From Tubulanus polymorphus (Eukaryota > Animalia > Nemertea): a stretch of DNA of 64,000 bases. The stretch lies in the NCBI RefSeq assembly GCF_964204645.1, contig NC_134033.1, forward strand, positions 1,508,131 through 1,572,130. The letters run 5' to 3'. The first letter of the stretch is position 1, and every line of letters starts with the position of its first letter. Below are positions 5,901-63,998 of this stretch, one piece after another. Both the position numbers and the translations under genes were made by a program. Below the pieces are notes generated by a model, which worked only from the letters and a program-made list of their open reading frames with translations, had not been told where the DNA came from and searched no databases.

Positions 5901-8900
5901 TATGTTTGGCAGGTGCTGCCATCTTTCAATAGAGATAAAAACTAATTACTAATTCCGTCAATACACCGCAGTGCGGTGTACTAGCAAAATCTATCAATGA
6001 TTCATACACCGCACTGAAAGGGTTAAGTATTTGAATGTGTTAATTGATTGGATTCTTTAAAGATTGAGACAGGGAAAATAACACGTTCGTATCAGGGAAT
6101 AGTCAGGGTGAAAGCAAGTCAAATTAAGGTGGCTCACCCCGAATTCGCCACCGACACACGAGATCACCCTATGACATCATCAGTACCGGTATTCGCTATC
6201 GTTTAAAAAAAGATTCTAATAATTCTGTTCTTTATTTTTTTTTTTCAGGGATTTTTCCCGGCTGATTTACACATGGTTTTCATACTGCGGCCGAAAGGTT
6301 TTTTCCAACGAGCAATTTCCGACATGGGTTACAAAATGGTGAAAGATGAATATAAATTCCAGGTCAGTTGACGAAATACTTTTGATATTTCTTACTCCTA
6401 TTCATCCTGCTAAACGACCGATCCCAGGCTCCGACTGCGGCGGAATTTATCGGCCCCACCAAGATGAAACGGGATCTCTGTCACTCCTCGATACCTTGAA
6501 TGCAAAATGCTTTTAAAAATGCTTGAAAATCCTTTAATTTGAGTAGAATGTTAAAACTGCTTTAAACCTCCATCAATTTTGAGAAATAGACGATTAGAAA
6601 TGTGTTGTACAGTTACCTACTCCTGAATAGGTACAGTCGAGCCCTGGGCTCGGTTTCATAGATGTGGAAGAAAGATTTTACCTGGGAACTATTTTGAAAT
6701 TTGTCAGTTATAACCATAGTTTCTGATTGTTGCTACGGCGGTTGTCACCCAGATTGATGATTTACCCCTAGGGATAACTTTGATACTCAGTCTATGAAAC
6801 CGGGCCCAGATTGATGATTTACCCCTAGGGATAACTTTGATACTCAGTCTATGAAACCGGGCCCTGGATTTTTTTTAACCCAATCAAGAAGTTACCGAAT
6901 TTAAAAGCTAAGTTTAGGTAACTAGGGACCCTGTGCCGAGTCTACTGTATATGAGGCCATCCCAAATTAATTGTCTGTTTGCCGTAACGCGGACTCAAAT
7001 TTTCGGGATGAGTCCGTGGGTAGAAATGTTTTTTTGCAAGATTTTAGGGCAAAAAACAAATTCATCACCTTTTTTATATGGAAATAATATCATCGAGAAA
7101 AATTCATTTCGATGAATCCCCAAAAAAAATTTTCACTCGGTACGTTTGAAGTCGGGTCGGTCGGGTTACGGCAAACAGACCATCATTTTGGGATTAATTA
7201 ATGAATTAATTTACTAATTAATTTATTTTCTGATCTCGTAGGTCGTGATGTGTAATAACGCGGAGGAGCTACACGAGTATATCGACGTGTGCGAACTGAC
7301 AGACGACTTCGGAGGATCAATTCACTACAACCACGAACAATGGGTTCAACACAGAGCTGTACGTTCTTTCACCCTATGACGTCATCCATAGAATTCATCT
7401 ATAGATCCTAGTAGTAGTAAACATGGCTGCCTTCGTAAATCCCCCTATAACATCATCAAATTACTGACTTAGGAAATGATTAGCAGTTGAGATAAACCCC
7501 CTATGATATCATCAAATTCGTAAAGACAACTAACATGAATCCACCTATGACATCATCAAACTGTAATAATGTCTCTTGGATGGATTTTATAATTGGTTGA
7601 TGTCAAAGGAGGCGTTTGCAAAGGTTGCCATCTCATTTGACGTTAATTAATTTTTTTTTCTAAATTTTCAGGCGATCGAAAAGTTTTCGTCGAACATGAA
7701 CGACATTTGTAAAACAATGCAGGAATTCATAACTCAACTGCAGGAGACGGAGATGCCGAACGATACTCCCGGAACGCAGGAGCTGATCAGAGATCACAAC
7801 GCTCAGCGTAAAGAGGTTCAGGAGGACTTACAGAGCGCCGTCGATCACGGGGAGTCGTTATTGAACTGTATTCGTAGTCTCGACGACTGGGCAGACGCTG
7901 CAACAGTGACAGACGCATCGGCAGCAGCAGCAGCAGCTGAGGCGTCGCGGTCAAATAATCTAGTTCATATTATAGCTGTAGAAAGGTTAATAATTCTCTC
8001 TACTCTCTCTATCTTACTCTCTTTGTCTCCCCACTCTCTCTCCTCTCCTCCCTCTCTCCTCCCCCTCTTTCCTCTCTCCTCACTCTCTCCGCTCTCTCCT
8101 CTCACTCTTCCCTCCTCTCACTCTCCCCTCCTCTCAGCCTTCCTTCTCTCAGGGTGGCGCCACTGACCTGGAAAACCTGGAAAACTCAGGGAATCAGAAA
8201 CTCTGGGAATCAAAAAAAAAGCTTAAAAATTCTGGAAAACTCGACAATTTGACAAATTTTACCAAAAACCTGGAAAACTCAAGGAATTCAGACCATTTTA
8301 TTGACCGTGTGTTTCTTTATCAATACGTGATTCAATGAAAAATGATTGAATTGTAAACATCTAAATTTCTCTGATTCACTCTCAGAGGGGATTTGTAGAT
8401 GGCAGATTTGTGGTGGCTGCCCTGTTCTTTCTCTTTTCTCCCGCTCAGCGTAGAACCACCATATAGAAAAAAATGTTGATAAAATATATTGAATGTCTTT
8501 AGTGGGTTCAGGCAGCATAGATTTTATATTTTTAGGTTATTGGAACAGTTGACCGAAACCATGGACAACTTTGACGATTTTTGGAGTAAACACGAAAAGA
8601 AGCTCGGACAATGTTTACAACTGAGGAAATTTGAGGAAGATTTTAGACAGGTATGAAAAATAGAAATACATTGAGTGAGGGGCTACAGTTGCTGAAAAGT
8701 TGATAAAAGTTTATCTGCGGATGGTCGACATAGTGACAATTTAAAGTTCATATAGTTCATCGATAGATTCAAACATCAACAATAACCGTGGAATTATAGG
8801 TCCAGAACTGTGTCACTGGTTCCAGCAACTGTGGACTGGATCCAGTAACTGTGGAACTGAATCCAGTAACTGTGGAACTTGGTCCAGTAACTGTGGAACT

Positions 8901-11900
8901 GAATCCAGCAACTGTGGAACTGGATCCATGAGCTGTGTAACTGGATCCAGAACTGTGGAACTGGATCCAGAACTGTGGAACTGGATCCAGCAACTGTGGA
9001 ACTGGATCCAGAACTATAGAACTGGTTCCAGCAACTGTGGAACTGGATCCAGCAACTGTGGAACTGGATCCAGCAACTGTGGAACTGGATCCAGTTACTG
9101 TGGAACTGCATTCAGTTACTGAAACTGGACTGCAGTTGGTGAAAAGTTGGTAAGAGTCATCAGTGGATAATCAGAAGTGACAAGCAAAAGTTCATTGTTG
9201 ATATCGTTTTTATCCGATGGTTATCTTTAACCAACTTTCCAGCAACTGCAGCCCCTGATCTTTGATTTGAAATTTTACTTTTATCCGAACTGTTTAAAAT
9301 GTGCCCGATTTCGTCGTCCGTAGATTCAATACATGATGGATAAATATCTGGATGAGTTGGAGCACATGACCGAGGCGGGAGAGACGCTCCAACGCGTCGA
9401 GACGTTGCTCCAACGAGTCGAACAGATCCGCGACGAGACGACCGAAGCGATCGAGAAAGCGGATGAACTGATCGAAAATGGAGAGAAGTTCATCGGAGAG
9501 GATTACTACGCCGTCGACTGCATCCGACCGAAGTGTATGGAACTGAAACGAATGCGAGATCAGCGTCGAGAATTACTCGACGGCAGACGTAAAACTCTCG
9601 AGACGAGTTACGAGTTACAAACTCGTATCGATAAAGTAAGTAAAAACTCAATCTCCAGTGCATAGTCATGGCTTAGACTTAAAACCAGTCTAAGACTTAC
9701 TTAGTTCTTTAGCCAATCTAACAACTTAAGACCAGTCTATGCTCATTTTAGTTCTTTAGCCAATCTAACAACTTAAGACCAGTCTAAGCTCATTTTGGTT
9801 CTATAACCAATCTAACAACTTAAGACCAGTCTATGCTCATTTTAGTTCTATAGCCAATCTAACAACTTAAGACCAGTCTATGCTCATTTTAGTTCTTTAG
9901 CCAATCTAACAACTTAAGACCAGTCTAAGCTCATTTTGGTTCTATAACCAATCTAACAACTTAAGACCAGTCTATGCTCATTTTAGTTCTTTAGCCAATC
10001 TAACAACTTAAGACCAGTCTAAGCTCATTTTGGTTCTATAGCTAATCTAACAACTTAAGACCAGTCTAAACTCTTTTGGTTCTATAACCAATCTAACAAC
10101 TTAAGACCAGTCTAAGCTCATTTTAGTTCTATAACCGATCTAACAACTTGAGACCAGTCTAAGCTCATTTTAGTTCTATAGCCAATCTAACAACTTAAGA
10201 CCAGTCTAAGCTCATCTTAGTTCTATAACCAATCTAATAACTTAAGACCAGTCTAAACTCATTTTAGTTCTATAAACAATCTAACAACTTAAGACCAGTC
10301 TAAGCTCATTTAAGTTCTATAACCAATCTAACAACTTAAGATTTAGGACCACATTTGGACTTAAGTCACCACCGTGCAACTAGCCCCTGTAAGCTCCATT
10401 CAGGGGCCGGTTTCACGATCGAGGCTTATATTCTAGGTCAACTCAAAGCGATGTCTGAGTTTGATAGTAGACTGTAAAGTCCAATAGCTGAAAATCCAGG
10501 TCGGCCATTCACCAGAATTTCCTTTTCTTTAAGAATGTCTGGAGAATATCCGGGAAAGTATTTTGAGATTGCTAGATCGCGCGTAAAATTAAACAGTTTG
10601 CGTCTATTTCTTATGTATTTGTGATTAATTGATCAGATTCTTAGCAGATCAAGTCAGAGAAAACAACGTGTATATCAGGGAATAGTCTGGGGAAAAGCGA
10701 GTCAAATGAAATCGGCCACCTTGAAGAGGTTTTAGAGTTCATTTCGATTTTATTTTTGCAGGCTAGTCAATGGTGCACGCATGGAGTTGATCTCCTGGCA
10801 ACGCAACAGATCGAAAACATCCAGACAGAAGACGGCGCTAAAGCGGCGATTGCGGATATCGAAACGTTTCTCGTGACGGTTAAAGATTTGAAATTGAACA
10901 ATCCGAAAGAATTTCGCAATCAATTCGAGCACATCCTTACTTCTGATACGCGGGTAAGTTTAATACGGAACCAATATTATTGATTCTGTAGGTTCATCAC
11001 TGGTTTAATCTTTTGTACAGAAAACGTGTTGTAGCTGCTATGCAGCTATATTGAATATCTTGTTTATTTTCAAACAGAAAACCCGTTATTGCTGCTTTTG
11101 AATAACTTGTTTATTTTTTAAAGGAACTTCATAATCTTTTCGTTCTCTTATAGTCCATGATCAACTGATTTAGAAATTAACAGAAAACCTGCAATGGCTG
11201 CTTTGCAGCTATATTGAATATCTTTCGAACAGAAAACCTGTTATTGCTGCTTTTGAATAACTTGTTTATTATTGAAAGGAACTTCATAATCTTTTCGTTC
11301 TCTTAAAGTCGATGATTCAACTGATTTTGATTTCATGATTTCAAACGAACAGAAAACCTGCAATGGCTGCTTTGCAGCTATATTGAATGTTTCATTATTT
11401 TCTGTTCTCCCACAGTCGACGGTTCAACAGGTTTTAAAACGAATCGACGACGTTCGAAACATGTGCGAGAAACGTCGCGACAGTTTGCGCCGCGTGGCGG
11501 ATAAACCACCGCGCCCTGTTCAGGCCGTCATACCGAAACCGTCGTCGGTGGCGACGCCGTCACCGCGTAAACACAAAACCACACCGACAAAATCGCCATC
11601 CGATCTCGATTTGAGGAGGCGTAAACATCTGTCGGATTCGAATAAGAAATCTCGAAGTCTCGATCATCGTAAGGTAAGAAAATTTCGACTCGAATAAGCT
11701 TACCCTGGTTATAATGGGGACTCTACATTCGACTGTGGCAATCGAGGATTCCACTTGTGGCAATCGAGGATCCTCCAGGTGTCGCTAGTGTGTATTCAGA
11801 CAACAAATTCTCAGATTCAAATTAAAATCTTTCCCTTATTTCTCAAATTCTGTGAATGATGATCAGTAAAATTTACCCTATATACGAACCTAAAGATCAT

Positions 11901-31327: not shown

Positions 31328-32742
31328 TGATGTAACTCAAATATTGCCGGCTGATAAACAAATCGGATAATCGTCAAGCTAATGAAGAAGATTGAATATG
31401 CAAAATGTACGGATGGGTGTAGTTTAATATAATTACCTTATCTTAATGTAAAGATACCGAAACAGCAAAATGTGGGTTGATGCGGTTCCCAATGCAGCAG
31501 CAGCAGCAGACTAGTCCAGGACGTTGCGACAAACGAGTTGTGTACATGTAGTTGTCAGTAGAAGCGAACTGGTTTCGGTTTAACCCTAAAAAGACACAAT
31601 ATTCATAATGTATAAATGTGTGTGAAATTGAACATCGGAAATCAGCGACAACAGCAAATTAGCCGTCATCTGTTTGTTGTTGAAATCCGACATCAACAGC
31701 AGCAGCGACACCAGTAACAGCAGCAGCAGTATCGGGATCTCCTCCGCAATCGTCAGCACCAACAGCCGCCAGTCTCATCTTGCGTTCTCAATCGCTAGGC
31801 GTCACAAATTCCTTCACGTTCCAGTCTCTCCTAACATCATCAGCCGCTAATTAGAAGGTTGTTTGCTTGAAGCCACACGTTCTTCACGCCTTGTTGCAGA
31901 GCTCTTATGGGTCGACCTTCATCACTGGACATCGGTTCTCGGACTGGCGTCGGGAGGCTCGAACCGCGCTTCTAATACCTACGTCGACCAATCAACGACG
32001 GTGCATCATCGATGCGACCGGAATGGATCAATCAGAAAGCTCGATCGCGCATTCCTGTGACAGACCCGAGTCCGTGACGCTAATCCGACAGAACCATTCA
32101 ATTCGAGCCAAACATTTTCAATGGGGCCTACAGGTCATCGAGTTTAATTCGACTATTCATAGAGGCACATATTGTTTAAGATAGAAATATCGAATGCTAC
32201 GATTTTAGCCTAAAATTGTATGCTGAAATTTTATCTAAACTATCCAACAAACTTTAGTGTAGATTTCCCTTCTATTTACGTCTGGTTTTGAACTATAATA
32301 CCGGCTCAATTTTACTATTTTCGAGTTTTGCTTTAGGATATCGAAGTTTGCTTAAGGATTTGTGCAGTCACGCGGCACTATTGTGTAGTAGAGCGTATGA
32401 CAGGTCTCCAGAGAGTAATTCTCTATTGGATAGAGTCGTTTTCAATCCGAATTTATACACAAGCTCACCAGACATCGCCGCGTACACATCTTCTTTAACT
32501 GAAATCTGGTGAAGTTAAAAAATTATCAAAGTTTTATCATCAGTTGAGAAAGAACTGTGATTGATCACCGCGCGCACTGCTTGCACCGAATAGTCGCTTG
32601 GATTTCTTCAGTTCGAGGAATTGAATAAATATAAAAAGATTTTCCGAACCCTCACCACTAAACTTAAAATAACAAACTAATATCGTAAAAAAGTCGAAGG
32701 TCCCTGGGGGAATTACTCCGCAACCTGGACCGGTATTGTGGG

Positions 32743-32972
32743 ATAAATAAATAATTCAGCCAGAAACGACTGAATTAAACATAATTTACCCCACACCAGT
32801 TATTCTGTAGGACTCACGCATTAGCAACCTCATTCCAGGGAGGACAGTACTCTCGACTCGCCCGCTTACCGGAGATCATTTGCCACATCCTGACCCGCCT
32901 CCTCCGAGACTCGAACCCGGGCCACAGCGGTGACACGCTAGTCGCCGACCGACTAAGCCATCCGGTCCGCCC
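32743..32972 (-). mobile_element. tRNA-derived SINE
   Basis: On the minus strand, A-box TGGCTTAGTCGG and B-box GGTTCGAGTC, followed by a unique body and an AT-rich end. The 3' boundary is approximate. Confidence 0.7.
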
Positions 32973-34696
32973 GATTGTGACAGGAAAACATTCGAACATA
33001 TTCCACGGCCATTCACATTCGGACAAAAGACCATGACGTCACAATGGTCAACGCCGTGACGATGTCGACTCAGACTGAAATCGCCCGTTTCTGACCAAAC
33101 TTGCAGCTCCAGAGTCTATATCTTGAATCTCTACAAATATATACTGATCGTTGCAGCATATTATTAGGCCTAGATACGACGGGTGGTTTTTGAATTTGAG
33201 AGTTCTAAATAGCGTATTTTCCGTTTCAAAAATCCAATATCCTAAATCCCCACAAAACTCTACGTGCGTCTCGTATGACAGCCGATCTGACTCATGTACA
33301 GAATATATATAGACTAATCACGTCCCGGTCACGGCCATGGTTCCAGTTAAGTCGTGCGCGACACATTTTGTTCAAATACGTATGCAACTTGCGCCTCTTA
33401 ACCCTTAAAAAACTTCGATTATAGTTAAGGAATGATTATTTTACTTTTAATATCACTATCATCAACGGCCAAAACCATTCCTTGGCCATTCATTGTCGAA
33501 CGAAAGTTGGGCTCGGCTGATAATGGTTTTCGCCCCACATAACCAAACTAACTTTTGAAATAATCAAACCTTTAGAAAGAGGGGTATCCCAGTACAGGTA
33601 TGCGAGTACATCCGAGCCGAATATAGAAGGAAATCCCCCACCTGTTTGGTACTCTTTCTCCAGGCGAAAAAGTCCAGAAAATCCCTTGTTTTATCATCAA
33701 TCTGTCTCTCAGGACCAATGGATTTGGGGTCCCTCTTCATTACAAATATGGTCTGATGCCTGACTGGATAAATGGATGACTGGTGACCGAATGACCGAGC
33801 GACTGATTGATGAGATATTCTTAACAATACAATCTAGGAAATGCAGAAATCACAGAGGACCCTTAAGGCGGGGATCTGAGACATAGACCTCTGGACCCCG
33901 TCAATAACTGTGCAAAATGAATGAAGCGTATTCGAAGGAGAAAATGTGGCACCAGACTGAATCATACGTATTACTTATTCAGTAATCCAATACGCACTAA
34001 GCCTCAGAAATGGTGATCGATGGTGGTTTTAATTCCGGGAAGCAGTATTTTCCTATGGGGGCAGGAGAAATTCTCCGCTTCATTCTCCGGAGTAAATGGA
34101 TAGATGATTGATATCGTAGCCAGGCCTGTAATGTGGCCGATTTTATAGGCAGTTTGCTTTCCCTATAGATAAAAGTTTCCTTAAAATGTGGACTTTTAAG
34201 TGGACCTTTTTGAAAAGGCGCTCGAAGGTAAAAACGGAGCCTAGTGACTTATGTGTTAGCAATGCAAGGCTCCCTACGGAGTCCAACGCTAGTCCTAGGT
34301 ATCTGTAGCACTATAAGATCGGGTAGGACATACGGCAAGCCTAGGATTTTATTCATTTCCAGCAAATTCATTTTTCAGAGCGAACTGTTTTGGGTCTTCC
34401 GGCGGTTTGTCGTAAACCACCTGAACTATCCCCCCCCCCCACTCCGCTGCAGGCCCGGTTGTTCGGAAGTTACTACTCCCCAGTCACTACACAGATTATA
34501 GGCTAGAGATAAAATGTTAATACCAGTCTATGCGTGTCACTGGTCAGTATATAACCGCAGTGTATAGATTTTTAAAAAAAGAGCAAAAAACAACCCTCTA
34601 AATTTGGGAAACTTATTTTATTCAATTCCTCGAACTGAAGAAATCCGAGCGACTATTCGGTGCAAGCAGCGTGGGATAACCTCATGTCGATCTTAA

Positions 34697-36368: not shown

Positions 36369-38834
<2,466 letters not shown>

Positions 38835-50562: not shown

Positions 50563-50740
50563 TTAATGTGTTGTCTCTGAAATTGTTTCTATTAAAACCC
50601 AAGGGCTACCCTCCATAGCACTGACTGATTACAGATCTGTCATCTGGCGGATTTGTTTACAATCGATATGCCAATTTTCAAATGATGATAAGTGTCGTCG
50701 CTCAAATGTTTATGATGTCTCTATTTTGTTTTCTAGAAAT

Positions 50741-53700
50741 ATGGCTCCAAAACGAAAGCAGATAGTAAGTATTCATTTTTTTTTGTTCCAATAATATGTC
50801 TGTATCTACATTGATACCTAGTATACTTACCTGAGTAGATGTGCACTACGTCATCGATATTTTTGAGATAGTGCGCACTATTTCATTGATATATCGGAGC
50901 TAGATTTAAATCCCCCGCCCCCACTCCCCCTGGTGTTGGCGTTCATACCAACCCATCAAAGATACCGTCCACTCCACCTCACTAACCATCCAGGATACAG
51001 ATGGAATAATGAATTAAATGTGGAATTGAACCCGGGACCGGTTATCATTTGATGTTACAATCAATATTCAAAACTGAAACATTTTCTGGGGCCGGTTCCA
51101 TAGTCAGGGCTTTGACTTAAGATCAGTCTAAGACCAACTTGGTTCTATAGCCAATCTAACAACTTAAGACCAGTCTTAAGATTTAAGACCACTTTCGGAC
51201 TTAAGTCTCGATTGACGTGCAACCACCCCCAGATGCTTATTTTTCAAATAATTCTAATGAATGTGAATGTTATTGTTCTTTTCTAACAGCCAGAAGTCCT
51301 GGAGGAAATTCCGCCGCCAGTAAGTTTAGATTTGATGATATCATTTTATGTAAACCTGTTTTGTTTAACCTGGTCCTCTGAAGCCGGTTAGACTGGTATT
51401 ATGTTTAACCCGTGCTCAGTTAACTGAATTCACTTTTAATCAAGTAAACCCAGATTTATTAAAGTAAACATTGGTCTCCATAAAACTGGCGCTTAGATTC
51501 ATTGATCATTTAATGAATGATTTTTATAGATATGAATGTTAATTCTCTTTTCTAGATAACAGTAGAAGCGGAAATTCATTTTGTAAGTTTTCTATTAATC
51601 TCCTCGGTGGAATATGATATCTACCATTTTCGCTGAGAGTCATTGAAACTTCATAACTCTTTAAGCAAGTTGTAACTGATTTCGTCTTCAGTTTGTGCGC
51701 GCGCTCACTTACACATACGCTTATATTTGCGCATATAGTTCATAATTATCATCAAACTCGTAGTAATAACGATAATAGTAATGATAATAATTACAATTGT
51801 CATTTTTAAAGTGCAAATATCCCGATAAAAGGAATTATCAAACTGATTTATCACGTGGTGTTTTTGGTTTTCTCTCATTGTAACAAGTTTACTCTGATGA
51901 AATCTTTTTCCAGATATTAAACCTGTCTGGTATTCGTTTTAATAATGATCTCTGTTAAATGTGTGCTACTCAATATGAAATAACAACGCAATTAATTACT
52001 ATTCTTTCATCGCGACAGTTTGCTGCTGCAGCGGCAGCAGCAGCAGCAGCAGCAGCAACGACAACAGAAGTTTGAATTTTTCTGTTTCATGGACTCTATC
52101 GTTTGAATCAAACTGTAAAACAAACGAATACAGAAATATCAAAGTTACAGAGATCAGAGTTTTAATGCAAGAAATTAATGAATTCTCTTTTCTTTTATTG
52201 CAACAGAACAGACCAACAGCGACGAATACAGTAAGTTTGAATTTTTCTGTTTAATGGACTTTATATTGTTTAAATAAAACCCTAAAACAAACGAATACAG
52301 AAATATCAGGGTTTTTCCAAATACAGATATAAAACTTGTCTCTTGTTTTAATTATAATATGATCTCCTGTGTTTAATGTTTGCTACTGAATATGAAATAA
52401 TGTAAGAAATTCATGAATTCTCTTCTTTTTTTATTGCGACAGAATTCAGCGACGACGACGACGACGACAAAAACGACAGCACCAGAAGTAAGTGAGAAGT
52501 TTTCTGTATCATGGAATTTCTAGTCGTGTTTATTTCTTTCTTACAGACGATGATTTGTTTGTGATTTTCATCGTATATTTCATACCGGGAACAAAGTCAT
52601 GAAAATAATCCTGCTTTCAATGAAATAAATTCCCGTCACTTAGAATTATTTTATAATCAAGTTTTTTTTATATAATATTAGCGCACACAGTAAAATCTGG
52701 AAGCATTTGCTCACGGATATATGTGCATATATTTTATGTATCTCTTTTATTGATGTATTTTTATTTACTGTATTTAACGTGTGAACGTGAAATAACAAAA
52801 CTAAAATGAATTCTCTTTTTTTCTTTCATGTCATCAGCGTAAACAAACAGCAGCAAAGGCAGTAAGTATTAATTCTTCTGTTACCTTGAAACAACCGATT
52901 CTTATGAGTTTTTCAACAGAATTATCATCAAAATTACAGAATTTAATCGGAGTTCGATTCCCTTCATAACTTATCGTTTTTGACCTGAATGTGAATGTTA
53001 TTGTTCTTTTCTAACAGCCAGAAGTCCTGGAGGAAATTCCGCCGCCAGTAAGTTTAGATTTTATGATATCATTTTATGTAAACCTGTTTTGTTTAACCTG
53101 GTCCTCTGAAGCCGGTTAGACTGGTATTATGTTTAACCCGTGCTCAGTTAACTGAATTCACTTTTAATCAAGTTAACCCAGATTTATTAAAGTAAACATT
53201 GGTCTCCATAAAACTGGCGCTTAGATTCATTGATCATTTAATGAATGATTTTTATAGATATGAATGTTAATTCTCTTTTCTAGATAACAGTAGAAGCGGA
53301 AATTCATTTTGTAAGTTTTCTATTAATCTCCTCGGTGGAATATGATATCTACCATTTTCGCTGAGAGTCATTGAAACTTCATAACTCTTTAAGCAAGTTG
53401 TAACTGATTTCGTCTTCAGTTTGTGCGCGCGCTCACTTACACATACGCTTATATTTGCGCATATAGTTCATAATTATCATCAAACTCGTAGTAATAACGA
53501 TAATAGTAATGATAATAATTACAATTGTCATTTTTAAAGTGCAAATATCCCGATAAAAGGAATTATCAAACTGATTTATCGCGTGGTGTTTTTGGTTTTC
53601 TCTCATTGTAACAAGTTTACTCTGATGAAATCTTTTTCCAGATATTAAACCTGTCTGGTATTCGTTTTAATCATGATCTCTGTTAAATGTGTGCTACTCA

Positions 53701-56700
53701 ATATGAAATAACAACGCAATTAATTACTATTCTTTCATCGCGACAGTTTGCTGCTGCAGCAGCAGCAGCAGCAGCAGCAACAACGACAACAGAAGTTTGA
53801 ATTTTTCTGTTTCATGGACTCTATATCGTTTGAATCAAACTGTAAAACAAACGAATACAGAAATATCAAAGTTACAGAGATCAGAGTTTTAATGCAAGAA
53901 ATTAATGAATTCTCTTTTCTTTTATTGCAACAGAACAGACAAACAGCGACGAATACAGTAAGTTTGAATTTTTCTGTTTAATGGACTTTATATTGTTTAA
54001 ATAAAACCCTAAAACAAACGAATACAGAAATTTCAGGGTTTTTCCAAATACAGATATAAAACTTGTCTCTTGTTTTAATTATAATATGATCTCCTGTGTT
54101 TAATGTTTGCTACTGAATATGAAATAATGCAAGAAATTCATGAATTCTCTTCTTTTTTTATTGCGACAGAATTCAGCGACGACGACGACGACGACGACGA
54201 CAAAAACGACAGCACCAGAAGTAAGTGAGAAGTTTTCTGTATCATGGAATTTCTAGTCGTGTTTATTTCTTTCTGACAGACGATGATTTGTTTGTGATTT
54301 TCATCGTATATTTCATACCGGGAACAAAGTCATGAAAATAATCCTGCTTTTAATGAAATAAATTCCCGTCACTTAGAATTATTTTATAATCAAGTTTTTT
54401 TTTATATAATATTAGCGCACACAGTCAAATCTGGAAACATTTGCTCACGGATATATGTGCATATATTTTATGTATCTCTTTTATTGATGTATTAATATTT
54501 ACTGTATTTAACGTGTGAACGTGAAATAACAAAACTAAAATGAATTCTCTTTTTTTCTTTCATGTCATCAGCGTAAACAAACAGCAGCAAAGGCAGTAAG
54601 TAGAAATTCTTCTGTTACCTTGAAACAACCGATTCTTATGAGTTTTTCGTCAGAATTATCATCAAAGTTACAGAATTTAATCGGAGTTTGATTCCCTTCG
54701 TAACTTATCGTTTTTGACCTGAATGTGAATGTTATTGTTCTTTTCCAACAGCCAGAAGTCCTGGAGGAAATTCCGCCGCCAGTAAGTTTAGATTTTATGA
54801 TATCATTTTATGTAAACCTGTTTTGTTTAACCTGGTCCTCTGAAGCCGGTTAGACTGGTATTATGTTTAACCCGTGCTCAGTTAACTGAATTCACTTTTA
54901 ATCAAGTTAACCCAGATTTATTAAAGTAAACATTGGTCTCCATAAAACTGGCGCTTAGATTCATTGATCATTTAATGAATGATTTTTATAGATATGAATG
55001 TTAATTCTCTTTTCTAGATAACAGTAGAAGCGGAAATTCATTTTGTAAGTTTTCTATTAATCTCCTCGGTGGAATATGATGTCTACCATTTTCGCTGAGA
55101 GTCATTGAAACTTCATAACTCTTTAAGCAAGTTGTAACTGATTTCGTCTTCAGTTTGTGCGCGCGCTCACTTACACATACGCTTATATTTGCGCATGTAG
55201 TTCATAATTATCATCAAACTCGTAGTAATAACGATAATAGTAATGATAATAATTACAATTGTCATTTTTAAAGTGCAAATATCCCGATAAAAGGAATTAT
55301 CAAACTGATTTATCGTGTGGTGTTTTTGGTTTTCTCTCATTGTAACAAGTTTACTCTGATGAAATCTTTTTCCAGATGTTAAACCTGTCTGGTATTCGTT
55401 TTAATAATGATCTCTGTTAAATGTGTGCTACTCAATATGAAATAACAACGCAATTAATTACTATTCTTTCATCGCGACAGTTTGCTGCTGCAGCAGCAGC
55501 AGCAGCAGCAACAGCAGCAACGACAACAGAAGCTTGAATTTTTCTGTTTCATGGACTCTATATCGTTTGAATCAAACTGTAAAACAAACGAATACAGAAA
55601 TATCAAAGTTACAGAGATCAGAGTTTCAATGCAAGAAATTAATGAATTCTCTTTTCTTTTATTGCAACAGAACAGACAAACAGCGACTAATACAGTAAGT
55701 TTGAATTTTTCTGTTTAATGGACTTTATATTGTTTAAATAAAACCCTAAAACAAACGAATACAGAAATATCAGGGTTTTTCCAAATACAGATATAAAACT
55801 TGTCTCTTGTTTTAATTATAATATGATCTCCTGTGTTTAATGTTTGCTACTGAATATGAAATAATGCAAGAAATTCATGAATTCTCTTCTTTTTTTATTG
55901 CGACAGAATTCAGCGACGACGACGACGACGACAAAAACGACAGCACCAGAAGTAAGTGAGAAGTTTTCTGTATCATGGAATTTCTAGTCGTGTTTATTTC
56001 TTTCTGACAGACGATGATTTGTTTGTGATTTTCATCGTATATTTCATACCGGGAACAAAGTCATGAAAATAATCCTGCTTTCAATGAAATAAATGCCCGT
56101 CACTTAGAATTATTTTATAATCAAGTTTTTTTTATATAATATTAGCGCACACAGTAAAATCTGGAAACATTTGCTCACGGATATATGTGCATATATTTTA
56201 TGTATCTCTTTTATTGATGTATTTATATTTACTGTATTTAACGTGTGAACGTGAAATAACAAAACTAAAATGAATTCTCTTTTTTTCTTTCATGTCATCA
56301 GCGTAAACAAACAGCAGCAAAGGCAGTAAGTAGAAATTCTTCTGTTACCTTGAAACAACCGATTCTTATGAGTTTTTCGTCAGAATTATCATCAAAGTTA
56401 CAGAATTTAATCGGAGTTCGATTCCCTTCGTAACTTATCGTTTTTGACCTGAAAAAAGGCGGCTCTAAATCCAATTCGGTTACAGATATCAAACCTGTCT
56501 ATTTTTGGTTTATTTGTATTGGTCATCAAATTCAATTCTTGGCGCACATTTTTATGCCCATAAACTGGTGCTGATTTTCATAAGCGCAACGATTGAATAG
56601 ATTCCGACTCGTTTTTTTCTTTCCCCTGGTAGATTTTCTGCAAAACAAGATGATGTTTTCCATGGTCGATTTACCAATTCCTAGGCTTTGTATTAATGAA

Positions 56701-59700
56701 TTTTATTCTTTTACAGCATCACACTGGAACGAGGTCCACGTTGGCGTCCCCAGACATCGAAGTAAGTTTAGATGTATCCGTTCTGTTGGCTGGTTATCAA
56801 TTGTAATATGTTGAGACTTGAGATGAAAATGTGAGATGTGCGGGGAAGGCAAAACACAAAACGCCGAACAGCAAAATGTCGTGTCCGTTGAACATTTTAT
56901 TGTTTGTGGGCAAAACGTGTTCTGAAAAGTGTGTTTTCTGTTTTGGCGAAACAAATGTTATGCCGGGTGCGGCGGGCTTATGGCGAGTGAATAATTAGGG
57001 TATATGAGAAAAAAAAGCGGGAATATAAATGAAGAACATTCGTAACTCTTTGCCTGCCACGCCTATTTTTCAGGCAATGCTGCGTTTTGCCAGGATTTCC
57101 GTGTTTTTCAGAGATTCATAAAACAAAAACAAGAAGAGATATCTTCTCATCAAATTTGTTTATATCTTTGATCTGGTCTTGCATTTTCATGTAAAATAAG
57201 CGGCATTTCTTCTAAGAGTGATAAAATCTGTAGCGATAACCAGTGCAGAGGGAGTATTTTGCAGAATATATGCTCGTTCATGCGTGTTCAGCCCCCATTT
57301 CAATAGATGATGTCACTCGCACACTGTATAGAACAACTGATGAGTTTGTTTAGTAGTAAAAGGCATTAAACTAACTGGTGTTGTGCGATGAATTCGCCAT
57401 CTATCGTTAGAGTTAAGAACCAAGCCAACCATATCGGTACGGTTTTGAGTTAAGAATCAAGCCAACCGTATCGGTACGGTTTTGAGTTAAGAAACAAGCC
57501 AACCGTATCGGTACGGTTTTGAGTTAAGAATCAAGCCAACCGTATCGGTACAGTTTTGAGTTAAGAAACAAGCCAACCGTATCGGTACGGTTTTGAGTTA
57601 AGAAACAAGCCAACCGTATCGGTACGGGTTTGAGTTAAGAAACAAGCCAACCATTTTGCCAGTACGGTTTTGGCAGGAATGTGATGGGAGATAACGAACA
57701 TACGAGAACGTGTTTGGGTGGAAATGAATTAAGGAGTCACGTCGGATCAACCCTCCTCCCAGTATATATCATCCAAGGGCATAACTCTTTCAGCACTCAC
57801 GGGTGATTTGATAAAAAAAAACACTCAGAGTGCCCATCATTGTTAACATAAAAGTAGGAAAATCAATAGAAACTTTCGAGCTCCATAGAGTGAAAACTGT
57901 AAGAGATAGAGCTTAATGTTAATTGAAAGGTTTCTAGGGTATCACTGACCCTTAGAAAAGATTGGTAACAATTTTTTGAAAAATGATCTAATTTGCACGA
58001 ATTATAGCTCTTTTTAAGAGCCTCAAAACGCTAAGCGCCACACATGGCATTATAAGTGGATTCGTTGTTTAAGAGACCAGAGAAAAACATTCGACTAAGA
58101 AACTCTGTCGTCACAAAGGTTTGAACCTATAAACCCTGGATTGATGAGACCAGTGACCGGCGGCTTAGTCCACTTGGCCACTGCGCCTCTCCAATTAATT
58201 ATAGCTCAGCGACCTATTTATTTGCTAACTCCTTAAATTTCAGGTATAGGATAAACAACCCAAGGGCTTAACGACAATTTATTGAAATGTCGTTTTTGAG
58301 ATGCTCTCACGATTCAATCTTTTGATGCAATTTTTTGGTAATTCGACTGTATTATTTAACGGGAGGGAGTGTTAATAGCGAAGCGAATATCGCAACTTTT
58401 TTGATGCCGTAAAAACCGGAATTACAACGATGTTCATATACATTCATACCTGTGCGTTATTTAAAACAGGTTCTCATAGGCGTCCCCAGGAATTTTCATA
58501 CGGGGTTCGAAATAAGCATCAATCCAGCATCCAAGCACAATGTCTGGTGTTTGGGGGGCCTCCCCCAAAAAACTTTTTTTTAAATTTGAGGCTTTAGAGA
58601 CGTTTTCCAGGCTCTAAATGAATCACTTAGAGTTAAAGGACTTAAGTCAAATTGGCAAGAAAAATCTTGAACATTGATTACATGTTAACTTGAGAAGTTA
58701 GCTATCTTGAAAAGGGTCCGCTACCCCTGCACCCCCCTCGGGGACGCCTATGGTTTTGTGCGAGTCAATGTGCGCTACGTCATCAATATTGGAGCAATTC
58801 AAAATAACAATTACAATTGTGAATGTTCGCTTATCCATTTTGTAATATAACGCTTGCCAGGGGTCAGGTATCACTCCCGAACTCGCCACCAGCCCCCTGG
58901 CCTCATGAAGCGTGATTTCATTACTGGCGCTGTTGCGCGTGACGTCATATATCGATTTGCGAAATACTTCCTTGTTCGGTAAAACGTTCGCTGATTGGTC
59001 TATGTAACGGGAAAACCAACATAAGTCAACTGACGGTTTGTTACAAGGGCTGTGATTGGTACGACCGGATTCTGGTCGGCTAGTAACGACTCCAATGACT
59101 CGTGAGGTCAAGGGGTTCGGGGAACAGCTTTAGCGTAGTGGGTTCGAATCCCTTGACAGGTGAAGATTTCAATATTGAAGCATTTCAAAATAACAATTAC
59201 AATTGTGAATGTTCGCTTATCCATTTTGTAATATACAGTGTTGCCACTTCTCCGGATTTCTCCGGAATTCCGGATTTAAAAAAAAATCCAATTTCATTTC
59301 CGGATTTTCGGGAGAAGTCAAATAACCACAAAAGAAAACATCGCGAAAAAAATAAAATCAATTCGGGATTCGACCCTAAACATCAAAACGTGACGGCTCC
59401 GTAGAGGGTTCGAAAAAGCCGTATTGTGCTGCCACGTAGTGGCAACAACCCCGCGCGCAGTACATGATTAAACCAAGATGACGCAACGATCGAAATCGAC
59501 TGACGCTTCGTTTGTTTTTTGGCTCTCTGGTTAATATATGAGGTGTATTTGCCGGAGCCAATTGCTATTTGAAAAAAAGATCTATAAGCGGTAATGAAAG
59601 TGAGGCCTATAACGCGTATTGCGCCAGAATGCATCTCCTGGCGTTCTAATTTAAAAAATTTTTGGGGGAGGGCCTCAGACCCCCGACTTATTTTCCGGAT

Positions 59701-62700
59701 TTTTAGCTTCACATAAGTGGCAACTCTGAATATAACATATTTCATTCTGTATGTTTTCTGTTCGATAAATTTTATATATGTCTTATTGACAATAGACATT
59801 TGTGTACCGGTATTACCTCGTTGATATATCGGGGCTAGAGACTAGAGATTTTGCCGGTCCGTTCAATTCAATCATCGATATATTCAAATTCAACATATAT
59901 TTATTGATCCTGCTAGTAGTCACACTGATTGACTACCCCGACTCATCGGACGGAACAGGAACACGGAGAACTTGAAGAATAAAGATGTAACTGACATACG
60001 ACAACACTGCTTTCGTAACTTTCATTCCTATGAAAGGAAAATACAGAATTCGACCCCGATTAATTCATATATCGTCAATCGTTGACAAGCAATTCATGTG
60101 TCATTCAAGGTGTCAATAAACACCTCTTTCAGTTTTCCTCTAATTGATATTTATGGAGATGTAAAATTTTCATTTATATTTCAGGAAATCGAAACAGTTT
60201 TCGAATTAAAGTTGGGGACGTCGCTCAGGGCCTCGTTCCAGAAGACGCTGACGCGAAAACATCCGGTAATGTGAAAAAGATTGATTTCAAAGGAAGTGCA
60301 GCTTACCCTAGGGGGAGCCACTTTGATTACATAAATTAAACAGTCAAAGGGTGAAAATGCTCTATACATTTTGTATTCAATTCATTACTTTCACGTTAAA
60401 ATGACTTTAGATATAACGACTTATCTAACTATTTGTTAGTTTTATTATAAACCTGAGAATTCCGTCCAAAATAAAACATTTTAATAATTTCATATCGATT
60501 ATAAACGAACAGATTACTGAAATTCATTGTTGTATATAACGAGCTTTCAGTGAATGACGTTTATTTCTCATCACTTTCAAACTGCTACTGATTTAAAATG
60601 CTCATACGGTCTCTTTTGTTCTCTATTTACAGCAAGTGATGGTAGATTTGCCGAGAGTTCATGCCATCGTGGTAGTTCGTGGGCCGAAAGTAGCAGTTGA
60701 CAACTGCTACGAGTACGCCCACGAACTACGCGACCGGCTCGTCGCGCAGGAGGTAAGAATAATAGTGTTAATAATATCCATACTTGATTATGACAACTAT
60801 AATATGAGAGTATATTAATGTTTCTTCGGTTGTGGGGGCCATCTAATCTTACTCAGTGTGTGCAGTCCCAGCATCATCCAGCCTGCAATCCTCGGTGCGA
60901 TATAGGGCACACGTTAACCCCTATTGAAGGATGTCATCGGCGGCCATCTTGAATTTATTTTTAGCGCGACAAAGCCTGGACGAACTTTGGTTATCGCAGT
61001 TAGTCGACTATTTGTGAACTAAGTGCAACAGAATGTCAGTTATGACTATAGTCAGAAATGATCGACTGTGGTATTGAGCACGGTCGCTGTAGTTCGGACT
61101 TCATGATTCCAAGATGGCTGGAATATGTTTCGACTGAGCTATCGCGCGTTCAGTGATTTCCAACCATTGGTCGACTAGCGACGAAAAACCAAAGTTTGCC
61201 CTGTATTTCTCGATGGATTCCCGTGAAACTTCGCTTTAAGACGGCTAAGCTTAATTCTTTCGAAGTCAATAACAAATTAAGTAAACTCTGTCGTTTTTTA
61301 CGAAGACTGCAACATTCTTTACCTGTCTTCCAGTTGTTGCCACTTTGCTAAGTTTTAGTTTCTCCTCATTTTAACAGCTCAGCTGATACCAAACAATCAC
61401 ACAATAATTTCTAGTTTATCGTCGCCGATAACAATTTCTATTGTTGATTACTCTCATCACTCTTGAAAATAGAAAAAGAATTTAATTGAATCGTTTTTAT
61501 TTAATAGACTCTGAAAGAGAAGAGAAAAATGGAAGTAAGTAAATTCTTTCGAATAATTACAGGCGGATTTAGGTCACACAGTTACTGAGTCTGAAATAAC
61601 AAAACTAAATAAATTAATTCTCTTTTCTTTCCAGAGGGAAAGGAAAAAAAAAGCATTAGAAGTAAGTTTGAATTTGTCTGTTTAATGGACTTTATATCTT
61701 TTAAACCGTAAAACAAACGAATACAGAAATATCAATTTCAAAGTTACATAAATATCAGAGTTTTTCCAAACACAGATAAAAAACTTGTTTTTTGTTTCTT
61801 TTGTTTTAATCAAGATATGATCTATGTTTAATGTTTGCAACTGAATACAAAATAACGCAAGAAATTCATGACTTCTCTTTTCTTTTATAGCAGATGAAAG
61901 CAGCAGCAGCAGCAGCAGCAGCAGCAAAAACAGCAGCAGCATTTGTAAGTTTGAAGTTTTCTGTATCATGGACTTTTTTGTCCGTCTGTTCATCTCTCCA
62001 TCTGTTCACTTGCGACATTTTCTATGATAGTGACGAGTTTCAAGGTCAACGGTTTTTGTATATTTTCACCAGGGGGCGTTGAATATTAAATAAGTCTGAT
62101 TATCAAGCGTCCAAATCATTTTTCGCGTGGGATTGGCGACTGGACCACAAGTTCATTGATAATATTAACCAACAGATATATGTAAACCAATGATCATCAA
62201 ATAATATAACAATCGATTCTTAAAGAGCTTTTCATCAGAATTTTGTCAAAAGTTACAGAATTTAATCTGAGTTCGATTCCCTTCAAAATGATTTACCATG
62301 TGGCATGTTTGATTTTAACTTAATGTAAGAAATTTATGCTAATGACATCAAAATCATTTTTCAGATACAGATATCTATATGAACCTGTCCAGTTTTTATG
62401 TCTACTGTGTTTATTAACGTTTGCTGCTGAATATGAAATTTAAAACAAAACTGAATTTTCTTTCTTTTATTGCAGCAGAAACCACCAACAACAACAGCTG
62501 CAGCAGCAGCGGCCGTTCCTGCACGAGTAAGTTTCTATTTTATAATTACGATTTTATGATTACGTTCATTTCTCTAACCGAGACCGAAACTTCTCGCACC
62601 TTACACTTTACATCCCTATTTCGTTACCTGATATAAGCATTTCATGAGGCTGTGGTAAACCTCTCGGCCTATGGGCAATTATTTTTTGCGATTTTCATCG

Positions 62701-63669
62701 ATTTCCAGACACAGATATTAAACCTGCCCAGTTTTTGTGTCTTCTGTGTTTAACGTTTGCTGCTGAATATGAAATATAAAAAAAAAAACTTATTGAATTT
62801 TCTTTCTTTTATTGCAACAGAAACCAACAGCTCCAGCAGTGGCAGCGGCCATTCCTGCACGAGTAAGTTCAATTTTATAATTAAGCGTCATTCGTTTCCC
62901 ATGTATACCCGCGTAGATGATCCTGTCTTAACATCAACTTTAATCCATTAGCACTCAGGAATTGCACTTAACTTAATGTAAGATATTTATGCTAATGACA
63001 TCAAAATCATTTTTCAGATACAGATATCTATATAAACCTGTCCAGTTTTTGTCTACTGTGTTTATTAACGTTTGCTGCTGTATATGAAATATAAAAAAAA
63101 AAAACTTACTGAATTTTCTTTCTTTTATTGCAACAGAAACCAACAGCAGCAGCACCGAAGGAAGTAAGTCAGCATTTTTCTGTATCATGGATTTTCTGTC
63201 GTGTTCATTTCTATCTGACAGCCAATGTATTTCATACCGGGAACAAAGTCATAAAAATTCTCCTGTTCGTTTTATTAAATAACGATACAGAATCAAAACA
63301 ATATAACGAGGCATCCGTCGCTTAGAACTCATTTATTACGTATATTGATACCTACGTGTGCTACTGAACATAAAATAACAAAACTAAAATTAATTCTCTT
63401 TTTTTCTTTCATGGCATCAGTGCAAACAAACAACAATAACAACAACGAAAGAAGTAAGTTTTGGCCATGTTTTTAGTTTTCGCTCATCGCTGACATTACT
63501 GATATCTTTCCTCGCAGTCTTAAATCGGCTCCACTCAATTTCTCTCATGAAATGCTTTCCATGTTCGAACTACACGTGATCATGAACTTGAAAATGAAAA
63601 ATGATTAAATCTAAATGTTGCTCGTTTATTTTATAGGTCACCAGAAAGCGACGCCGATCCGTCGACGAG
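50741..63669 (+). CDS. Uncharacterised microexon-built protein (NLS, A/T/K/P-rich repeats, central KH-like module); 3' end not seen in window
   Basis: Phase-0 AG...GT exons: 50741-50764 MAPKRKQI; 51290-51319 PEVLEEIPPP; 51556-51582 ITVEAEIHF; 52207-52230 NRPTATNT; 52443-52487 NSATTTTTTKTTAPE; 52838-52861 RKQTAAKA. Copy 2: 53018-53047, 53284-53310, 53934-53957, 54170-54220, 54572-54595. Copy 3: 54752-54781, 55018-55044, 55671-55694, 55907-55951, 56302-56325. Then 56717-56761 HHTGTRSTLASPDIE; 60185-60265; 60633-60752; 61508-61534 TLKEKRKME; 61635-61661 RERKKKALE; 61894-61944 MKA9KTAAAF; 62479-62526; 62821-62862; 63137-63163; 63421-63453; 63637-63669 VTRKRRRSVDE. All lengths are multiples of 3 with no stops; 24 of 27 donors are GTAAGT. 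Confidence 0.8.
51258..56453 (+). repeat. Tandem triplication of a 1.73-kb exon+intron block
   Basis: Units start at TGAATGTGAATGTTATTG: 51258, 52986, 54720. The third ends at about 56453. Copies differ by scattered SNPs and trinucleotide-run lengths. Confidence 0.97.
57410..57672. repeat. 37-bp minisatellite, about 7 copies, with internal hairpin
   Basis: GAGTTAAGAAACAAGCCAACCGTATCGGTACGGTTTT, head to tail. Confidence 0.95.
58095..58188 (-). mobile_element. tRNA-like SINE head fragment
   Basis: Minus strand TGGCCAAGTGG (A-box) and GGTTCAAACC (B-box). Confidence 0.55.
58475..58752. mobile_element. MITE with 13-bp TIR
   Basis: CATAGGCGTCCCC ... GGGGACGCCTATG; flanks GTTCT and GTTTT. Confidence 0.78.
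59236..59728. mobile_element. hAT-like MITE with apparent 6-bp TSD
   Basis: AATATA|CAGTGTTGCCACTT ... AAGTGGCAACTCTG|AATATA, with subterminal TCCGGA repeats. Confidence 0.8.
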
Positions 63670-63925
63670 GTCAGTTTGAATTCTATCGAATCGTTCTCCC
63701 GTTATTACTTTCAATCTGTCTTTTCGTCCATAGATAGGATCTCACAATCGCCAGTGGTATAGGCATTGTTCAGCAATTCAAGGGTGCTAATGTCCTAGAA
63801 AACCTGGCAATCTCATTGAATCAGAAAGATTGGGGAATTTGATAGATTTTTACCAAAATCCTGGAAAACACAGGGGATTTATAAATTCTTAATACTACAA
63901 AATCAGGAAAAAAAGTGGTCTACCG

Positions 63926-63998
63926 TCGGTCGGTCGGTCGGTCGGTCGGTCGGTCGGTCGGTCGGTCGGTCGGTCGGTCGGTCGGTCGGTCGGTCGGT
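63926..63998. repeat. (TCGG)n microsatellite
   Basis: Directly visible. Confidence 0.97.

Follow-up and report, generated by a model that had tools for sequence, protein, structure and literature searches.

A predicted phase-0 microexon gene of Tubulanus polymorphus, enlarged by exon-plus-intron cassettes and present in multiple near-identical copies

Introduction

The closest described systems are the micro-exon genes (MEGs) of schistosomes, which consist of very short exons (6-81 bp) with lengths divisible by three, separated by far longer introns, and which encode secreted proteins with an N-terminal signal peptide, the longest of 189 residues (PMC10526429). The locus described here shares with MEGs a predominance of very short 3n exons, long introns, poor automatic annotation and the property that loss of a cassette is frame-neutral. 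In contrast, its predicted product is 735 aa long and has no leader as modelled, and the gene is embedded in large segmental duplications and possesses larger non-repetitive central and C-terminal exons. Exon skipping has been shown for MEGs, whereas the present gene is known from DNA alone. No sequence similarity to schistosome MEGs was found, and identity with them was rejected because the product as modelled carries no signal peptide and is far too long.

In the PEVK region of titin, the fibrillar collagens and tropoelastin, each phase-symmetric exon encodes a short peptide module, and the exons have undergone tandem duplication; the titin, collagen and elastin genes are conserved and single-copy, with known folds or mechanics. 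The present gene resembles them in having one module per symmetric exon and in having grown through tandem exon duplication, but it belongs to an orphan, multi-copy family in which the cassettes are flanked by approximately 100 nt of homologous intron. An association of exon-phase symmetry with intrinsic disorder has been described (PMC3632108). Neural and endocrine microexons dependent on SRRM3/4 are at most 51 nt long and possess strong 5′ splice sites and a UGC between the polypyrimidine tract and the AG (10.1101/2024.09.17.613571). Exons of at most 51 nt, strong 5′ splice sites and some UGC acceptors also occur at the present locus. However, the SRRM3/4-dependent microexons are single conserved alternative exons in ordinary genes, whereas the present gene owes 56% of its coding sequence to its 34 microexons, and among its 26 non-redundant acceptors only 6 carry a UGC. 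Ampliconic multi-copy gene families reside in large segmental duplications, and the present family is similar to them in its approximately ten copies at 96-99% identity, in its units of tens of kilobases in tandem or inverted arrangement, and in its partial and rearranged derivatives.

Gene Model and Splice Signals

The window, that is, the whole stretch of DNA analysed, comprises 64,000 nt. On its + strand, an earlier note had proposed a hidden microexon gene built from 27 units of a polypyrimidine tract and AG followed downstream by GTAAGT. These units were reproduced at 50741-63669, where they amount to 1014 nt, or 338 codons; as claimed, all but two have lengths of 24-51 nt (25 of 27), and the remaining two are 81 and 120 nt. 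When the units were joined, frame 0 contained no stop codon, whereas the alternative frames contained 16 and 5. The exon coordinates also stood overall, with corrections to three exons, designated A (60185-60265), H1 (61508-61534) and H8 (63637-63669). The earlier view that such a chain is unlikely to arise by chance was borne out by the clustering of GTAAGT, which occurs 35 times on the window's + strand, 24 of them within the last 13 kb, and by the near-absence of such units elsewhere in the window: none is present on the rest of the + strand, and none of the five on the entire − strand is in frame. These tiny in-frame exons belong to a coherent, hidden phase-0 microexon gene, as predicted from its sequence.

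The coding part of exon 1 (50741-50764, donor GTAAGT), comprising eight codons including the ATG, is intact in all six other full copies of the gene. It is followed by three copies of a six-exon cassette unit of 1.73 kb that are 99% identical to one another and contain phase-0 exons a to f. Unit 1 (51258-52989) carries exons a (51290-51319), b (51556-51582), c (52019-52069, donor GTTTGA), d (52207-52230), e (52443-52487) and f (52838-52861); unit 2 (52986-54723) carries a (53018-53047), b (53284-53310), c (53747-53794, donor GTTTGA), d (53934-53957), e (54170-54220) and f (54572-54595); and unit 3 (54720-56453) carries a (54752-54781), b (55018-55044), c (55481-55531, donor GCTTGA), d (55671-55694), e (55907-55951) and f (56302-56325). 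The three c exons are in frame and have weak donors, and the earlier note had rightly left them uncounted; together with them, the window holds 30 exons. Because 18 of these 30 belong to three near-identical units, only about 18 independent exon types are represented, and fewer once paralogous cassettes are merged.

Downstream of the units lie the phase-0 exons G (56717-56761, 45 nt), A (81 nt, donor GTAATG) and B (60633-60752, 120 nt, donor GTAAGA), the last two forming the first and second halves of a non-repetitive central segment. The basic exons H1 and H2 (61635-61661), each of 27 nt, are followed by the Ala-rich (GCA)n exon H3 (61894-61944, 51 nt), which is 42-63 nt long in other copies, and by H4 (62479-62526, 48 nt) and H5 (62821-62862, 42 nt), a pair that occurs one to three times in other copies. 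H6 (63137-63163, 27 nt), H7 (63421-63453, 33 nt) and H8 (33 nt, donor GTCAGT), which encodes a basic cluster, complete the exons in the window, and the gene runs on past its end. All of these exons are on the + strand. Further exons were placed in L009 (C9:1572131-1582130) at positions 949-1002, 1930-1962, 3323-3364, 4189-4230, 4741-4791, 5551-5602, 6204-6269, 8291-8526 and 8862-9329, after which the frame terminates in TAG.

The full predicted model consists of 39 exons with 2208 nt of coding sequence and spans 22.6 kb, from 50741 to 9.3 kb beyond the window end. Frame 0 is free of stops over 733 codons, and the alternative frames contain 26 and 22. Phase-0 microexons of 24-54 nt account for 34 of the 39 exons, and three asymmetric exons (52, 66 and 236 nt) together bring the frame back. 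The G+C content is 56% in exons versus 35% in introns. Every exon of the model is preceded by a pyrimidine-rich tract and AG, and 31 of the 38 donors are perfect GTAAGT. On this sequence evidence, the locus is probably a real protein-coding gene that is invisible to ORF-based reading, has been amplified and enlarged by cassettes, and has a predicted intracellular product. Counting against the model, neither AATAAA nor ATTAAA was found within 1.5 kb of the stop codon. A search of sequencing runs yielded three DNA runs, which covered the exons and introns of 60000-63900 evenly and without splice joints, and one possible RNA run that was empty; this outcome is no evidence for or against expression. 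No tRNA genes were found at 40000-64000, and ORFs elsewhere in the window could be assigned to no family. Since genes composed almost entirely of microexons elude ORF-based and many automatic annotations, a family of at least 40 loci may be absent from the gene set.

Predicted Protein

The product is rich in Ala, Thr, Pro, Glu and Arg and is mostly of low complexity. It comprises six basic clusters, in line with the basic motifs noted earlier, together with the short central segment encoded by exons A and B and a non-repetitive C-terminal block. Homology searches were run exon by exon; exons were joined for stop and composition counts and for alignment of the A-B junction with a paralogue on C8 in which the two are fused. 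In Pfam, exons A, B, J2, J3 and J4 and the fused paralogue gave only one low-complexity match, and KH profiles gave no match at E values up to 10 with exons A and B apart or with the fused paralogue. A PDB sequence search with the exons and the fused paralogue returned nothing meaningful, and nothing usable came from a feature search of the ESM Atlas. When the last exon was compared by HMMER with 1.84 billion representative proteins, only two low-complexity Pro-Glu matches and no homologue were obtained. The AlphaFold single-sequence model of the fused paralogue was all-helical with a pLDDT of 48, too poor to use, and the predicted fold of the C-terminal 77 aa (pLDDT 61) was too poor for a fold search. 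These results lend no support to a folded domain at 60185-60752, and the earlier picture of one folded domain is also incomplete: conservation in the wider family resides in the C-terminal block beyond the window.

The N-terminus as modelled has no hydrophobic leader, in agreement with the claim that a signal peptide is lacking: the first 25 aa begin with a basic motif and average −0.25 in hydropathy, and no 19-aa window exceeds a Kyte-Doolittle mean of 1.39, a value reached in poly-Ala, so that no hydrophobic segment is present as modelled. We infer that the predicted product is intracellular and disordered and that it differs between paralogues in length and charge; judging from the basic motifs only, it is probably nuclear. 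An upstream untranslated exon is likely because a strong acceptor (a pyrimidine-rich tract with AG at 50736-50737) lies 3 nt upstream of the ATG. This acceptor also leaves room for a further upstream coding exon, and a signal-peptide exon could have been missed there. The product would then be mucin- or elastomer-like, either secreted or structural, with glycosylated or cross-linking Thr/Pro and poly-Ala/Lys cassettes, and the Thr-, Pro- and Ala-rich cassettes do resemble those of modular extracellular proteins. However, a search of the 12 kb upstream revealed no exon that combines an open frame with the required phase and a strong donor, the ATG carries A at −3 and G at +4, and Arg-rich clusters beside an acidic Pro-Glu tract are atypical of such proteins. 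A secreted product is accordingly considered improbable, and an intracellular one is preferred.

Cassette Growth and Exon Skipping

With exons masked, the intron sequences on either side of cassettes c-f and H2-H7 show 74-93% identity when aligned. The flanks of H2 are homologous to those of cassette d and the flanks of H3 to those of cassette e, and the flanks of H7 are 93% identical to those of cassette f. Each cassette thus keeps the homologous intron sequence on either side, and these alignments show that the predicted gene was enlarged through tandem duplication of exon-plus-intron cassettes. An origin of the cassettes from a dispersed repeat was rejected, as they were found solely inside the gene family. 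Because all cassettes are in phase 0, their gain, loss or in-frame resizing at the DNA level preserves the frame, and it is exactly in these ways that the paralogues differ. The locus offers a clean natural case of phase-0 exon-plus-intron cassettes allowing a coding sequence to lengthen, shorten and vary without frameshifts, with ten paralogous snapshots of this process available.

The same symmetry would make the skipping of any of the 34 microexons frame-neutral, and each copy might therefore act as an intracellular MEG-like system that yields an in-frame ladder of isoforms. The weak donors of the three c exons suggest that these could be facultative, and the tandem CAGCAG acceptors at H4 permit 3-nt shifts. 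On the other hand, the prevalence of perfect GTAAGT donors favours constitutive inclusion, and the variation actually observed lies between paralogues, in DNA. The UGC near the acceptor that is typical of regulated microexons (background 0.11 per 15 nt) is found at just the six acceptors noted above; five of them derive from one cassette lineage, and the sixth belongs to J4, the last exon. Skipping is compatible with cassette growth and would add to it, but we consider it unlikely. Similarly doubtful is the combined picture of an orphan amplified family of approximately ten copies and at least 33 related loci, whose disordered, intracellular and probably nuclear products are diversified in length, charge and Thr/Ala/Pro content both by paralogue cassettes and by transcript skipping. 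If true, this family would parallel, inside the cell, the repertoire of secreted MEG proteins of schistosomes, and if transcripts do skip cassettes, MEG-type diversification would no longer be confined to the secreted proteins of parasites but would also include an intracellular protein of a free-standing gene family.

Copies and Wider Family

The multi-copy state of the gene is a new finding: the segment in which it lies spans 50 kb or more, and nine complete and two partial copies of it were found at 96-99% identity on three contigs. Colinear homology between copies exceeds 40 kb and extends to position 32300 of the window. An intact exon B was found at 11 loci (93-100% aa identity); the last exon is intact at nine loci. 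The number of cassettes varies from copy to copy. The multi-copy nature of the gene had been missed in the first reading.

The copies occur in both orientations, and parts of the segment are repeated at least 40 times, as might be expected if the gene were carried by a mobile or virus-like element of very large size; such a carrier would account for near-identical copies of 50 kb or more. Such an element is nevertheless highly improbable: no transposase-, integrase- or capsid-like ORFs were found in the window and Pfam gave no matches, the largest window ORF outside simple repeats is at most 311 aa, and several copies are paired head to tail at distances of 78-82 kb, a pattern known from tandem segmental duplication.

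In an older, 86%-identical paralogue on C8, the exons at 60185-60265 and 60633-60752 are joined precisely where the model places their junction. This fusion establishes one intron boundary, and the next exon is probably also fused without an intron. Broken, frameshifted derivatives are present on C8 as well. The predicted C-terminal exons tie the gene to a wider lineage-specific family, whose members, 45-53% identical in these exons, form tandem arrays and number no fewer than 33 additional loci.

Selection on Frame and Sequence

In the other copies, all 226 phase-0 exon instances are in frame and free of stops, including 65 of altered length, and splice sites are retained throughout. Length changes are divisible by three in 19 of 19 cases in single-copy exons versus 17 of 69 in introns. 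The introns contain 214 distinct non-3n indels in approximately 19 kb, a rate that predicts about 24 in the exons, where the net number observed is zero. Most exon length changes, however, fall within trinucleotide repeats, in which slippage alone yields multiples of three, and this weakens the argument for selection on frame.

The family could alternatively be recently amplified and silent or decaying, with a frame kept open by its youth and by three-nucleotide slippage. The copies differ by just 1-4%, so that some survival of open frames is expected even without selection; the failure to find a homologue and the broken derivatives on C8 point the same way, as does an exon divergence that is not lower than that of introns (variable sites 5.6% versus 4.4%), which also speaks against the gene model. 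This reading is nonetheless distinctly unlikely in view of the frame and splice-site retention described above and of a pN/pS of 0.27 over 434 non-repeat codons (28 synonymous and 22 non-synonymous sites; binomial P = 4e-6). Purifying selection on the copies, from which expression would follow, is what we infer from these sequence comparisons. Silence or decay is also opposed by a second subfamily, which keeps the C-terminal block at 45-53%, with open frames of approximately 143 aa, and by the lower variability of CpG sites in exons (5.8%) than in introns (13.1%).

Exon chain and complete gene model

A chain of short exons begins at position 50741 on the forward strand; every exon has a pyrimidine-rich tract plus AG on its 5′ side and a donor of GTAAGT or similar sequence on its 3′ side. 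The 27 units counted in the earlier note, which had read a phase-0 microexon gene at 50737–63669, were reproduced exactly (1014 nt, 338 codons), and the joined units contain no stop in frame 0 versus 16 and 5 in the remaining frames. That such a chain is very unlikely to be a product of chance, as claimed there, was upheld by the clustering of GTAAGT (24 of 35 forward-strand instances lie within the last 13 kb of the window), by the count of such units elsewhere in the window (zero on the forward strand and five on the reverse strand, none in frame) and by a G+C content of 56% in exons versus 35% in introns. One 1.73-kb unit of six exons, cassettes a–f, occurs in three 99%-identical copies and provides 18 of the 30 exons in the window. 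Three extra in-frame exons, one per repeat unit, carry the crippled donors GTTTGA, GTTTGA and GCTTGA; they could be facultative or no longer functional.

The next 20 kb past the window (C9:1508131–1572130), in a genome of 268 Mb and 77 contigs, was read to extend the gene. The chain continues with five further phase-0 microexons, followed by exons of 52, 66 and 236 nt, asymmetric singly but jointly restoring the frame, and by a last exon of 468 nt with TAG at its end, 9.3 kb past the window. The complete model, of 39 exons and 2208 nt, encodes 735 aa, with no internal stop in frame 0 versus 26 and 22 in the other frames; 34 of the exons do not exceed 54 nt and account for 56% of the coding sequence, and 31 of the 38 donors are exactly GTAAGT. 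An acceptor 3 nt 5′ of the ATG implies an upstream exon; a candidate upstream coding exon was looked for within 12 kb and not found, and a secreted product is therefore unlikely. The absence of a signal peptide, as asserted in the earlier note, is borne out by the 735-aa model, in which no hydrophobic leader or membrane-like segment was found.

Several minor features accompany the gene. The 3.4-kb intron separating exon G from exon A contains a 37-bp tandem repeat (57410–57652; 6.6 copies, 96% identity), and the intron that follows exon H8 contains, at the edge of the window, a perfect (GTCG)n repeat of 18.5 units (63925–63998). Directly after the stop codon is a tandem repeat of ~160-bp period (positions 9509–10472 of the first 10 kb past the window), whose copy number varies between amplicons; no AATAAA or ATTAAA was found within 1.5 kb of the stop. 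An inverted partial copy of the 236-nt exon (C9:1587552–1587686, C9 being the contig of the window; L010:5422–5556, reverse strand, in a downstream stretch of it) lies some 6 kb past the stop, shows 89% amino acid identity over residues 34–78 and is found with the other gene copies too.

Gene copies and probable selection on the reading frame

Whether 60185–60752 has paralogues, a question raised earlier, was answered with a 701-nt probe over exons A and B including their intron, which gave about ten genomic matches at 96–100% identity on contigs C9, C11 and C8; exon B is intact at 11 loci and the last exon at nine. Comparison of 40 kb from each of five other copies showed colinearity with the window at 91–99% identity in colinear stretches, mostly 95–99%, from ~39500, the edge of the compared sequence, to more than 17 kb past the window. 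Because colinear homology reaches a probe at 32300–33300, which is colinear with six copies, and several copies form head-to-tail pairs spaced 78–82 kb apart, the amplicon is at least 50 kb in size, a lower bound set by the compared sequence. The gene sits among large duplications nested within one another. The segment 32300–33300 recurs 40 times or more (91–99% identity), for the most part within the first 5 Mb of C9 and C11. Also in the window are a 2.4-kb (AGAC)n microsatellite of ~616 units (36371–38833), the source of strong A/T and G/C skew there, and many further minisatellites of 20–80 bp at 1–31000.

Exons were located in one partial and six further full copies. The phase-0 exons of these copies, 226 instances in all, are without exception in frame and stop-free, 65 of them differing in length from the reference, a count to be read with the youth of the copies in mind; H5 acceptors that seemed lost proved to be AGs moved by exactly 3 nt. 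Length changes are divisible by 3 in 19 of 19 cases in single-copy exons versus 17 of 69 in the intervening introns, although most exon changes fall in GCA, ACG and CCN repeats, where slippage in threes is expected anyway. Introns carry 214 distinct non-3n indels in ~19 kb, a rate that predicts ~24 in exons, where none is observed net. Across 434 non-repetitive codons, the variable sites divide into 28 synonymous and 22 non-synonymous ones, a pN/pS of 0.27 (binomial P = 4e-6), and overall exon divergence is not lower than that of introns (5.6% variable sites, or 4.5% without repeat exons, versus 4.4%). With these caveats, the copies appear to have been kept as coding sequence.

Origin and variation of the cassettes

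With exons masked, the flanks of cassettes c, d, e and f (~110 nt on the 5′ side and ~90 nt on the 3′ side) match at 74–93% those of H2–H7, which lie across the central segment from c–f, and because these intron flanks align, the microexons must have spread as exon-plus-intron modules. Relatives of the cassettes elsewhere, also raised in the earlier note, proved confined to the family: a cassette probe gave no match outside it, and a dispersed-repeat origin was thereby ruled out. Paralogues differ in cassette content: the 1.73-kb unit occurs two or three times and the H4/H5 pair one to three times, and there are an additional d and many in-frame length variants. Frame-neutral cassette variation thus distinguishes gene copies in their DNA; the combinatorial splicing put forward in the earlier note would be a second, candidate level of variation. 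Within one gene, the units at 51258–56453 are 99% identical, equal to or above the likeness between gene copies. That they are so alike, yet three are present in most copies, suggests that the units still undergo gene conversion or unequal crossing-over with one another.

Schistosome micro-exon genes have short exons in multiples of 3 and long introns, with a signal peptide and small size as constant features (PMC10526429). The earlier comparison with these genes holds for the exon architecture, which is shared, and fails for the other features, since the gene model lacks a signal peptide and its product is not small. Titin PEVK, collagen and elastin are fibrous or disordered proteins with symmetric-exon modules, and the gene resembles such modular genes. 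A link between symmetric exon phases and intrinsic disorder has been described (PMC3632108). The gene is best called an orphan, amplified, microexon-cassette gene.

Predicted product and expression

The predicted product is rich in Ala (16.6%), Thr (11.3%), Pro (10.9%), Glu (10.9%) and Arg (9.4%), with a net charge of 0 and six basic clusters. Based solely on these clusters and the absent leader, the best reading is that it would be intracellular, probably nuclear and largely disordered. Homology searches were run per exon, exons being joined only for stop and composition counts and for the A+B junction alignment with the C8 paralogue. No Pfam family or PDB relative was found for any exon searched, an HMMER search with the last exon against 1.84 billion protein sequences returned two low-complexity matches only, and no Atlas look-alike was found; function cannot be read from homology. 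AlphaFold single-sequence models were poor: the fused A+B paralogue reached pLDDT 48, and the C-terminal 77 aa, modelled as four short helices, pLDDT 61. A KH-like identity is unsupported by sequence.

The three public runs containing the locus are all DNA, with even intron and exon cover and without splice joints, and the only candidate RNA run for the species is empty. Donors of such strength favour efficient inclusion of the predicted exons, and the likeliest sites of any alternative use would be the weak-donor c exons and CAGCAG acceptors.

Wider family and a fused paralogue

Relatives of the 78-aa and 155-aa C-terminal exons occur at no fewer than 33 further loci (45–53% identity, open frames of ~143 aa), with tandem arrays at C6 0.65–1.75 Mb (650000–1752000; period ~30–33 kb), C3 0.42–1.33 Mb (419000–1328000) and C8 15.07–16.3 Mb (15074000–16315000) and array periods of ~30–45 kb overall. 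Weaker loci, matching the 78-aa exon alone (E 0.07–0.9), lie at C12 3.30–3.34 Mb (3299000–3336000) with a period of ~11 kb. Together, these loci constitute another subfamily within the gene family. The conserved match covers residues 88–153 of the last exon, and because it lies beyond an internal GTAAGA, it shows that this donor-like site is read through.

At C8:13995500–13997600 (L032:1500–3600, L032 being a stretch of C8), adjoining a partial copy, is a tandem array of ~720-bp units, each with a version of exons A+B at 86% identity that is continuous without the 367-nt intron. Because this sequence crosses the predicted A|B junction without an intron and with the same codon count as the gene, the boundary 60265|60633 is fixed independently of the splice-site reading. 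Upstream of the fusion, the last ~22 nt of the preceding intron and AG, the normal acceptor of exon A, are retained, and downstream it probably runs on into H1-like sequence with the introns precisely missing. The fusion may represent intron loss via spliced RNA or a state preceding intron gain, and the boundary is fixed under either. The frame over the junction is open in one unit and has a 1-nt deletion in others, and the fused A+B version adjoins a basic, Ser/Lys-rich reading frame that is unrelated to it.
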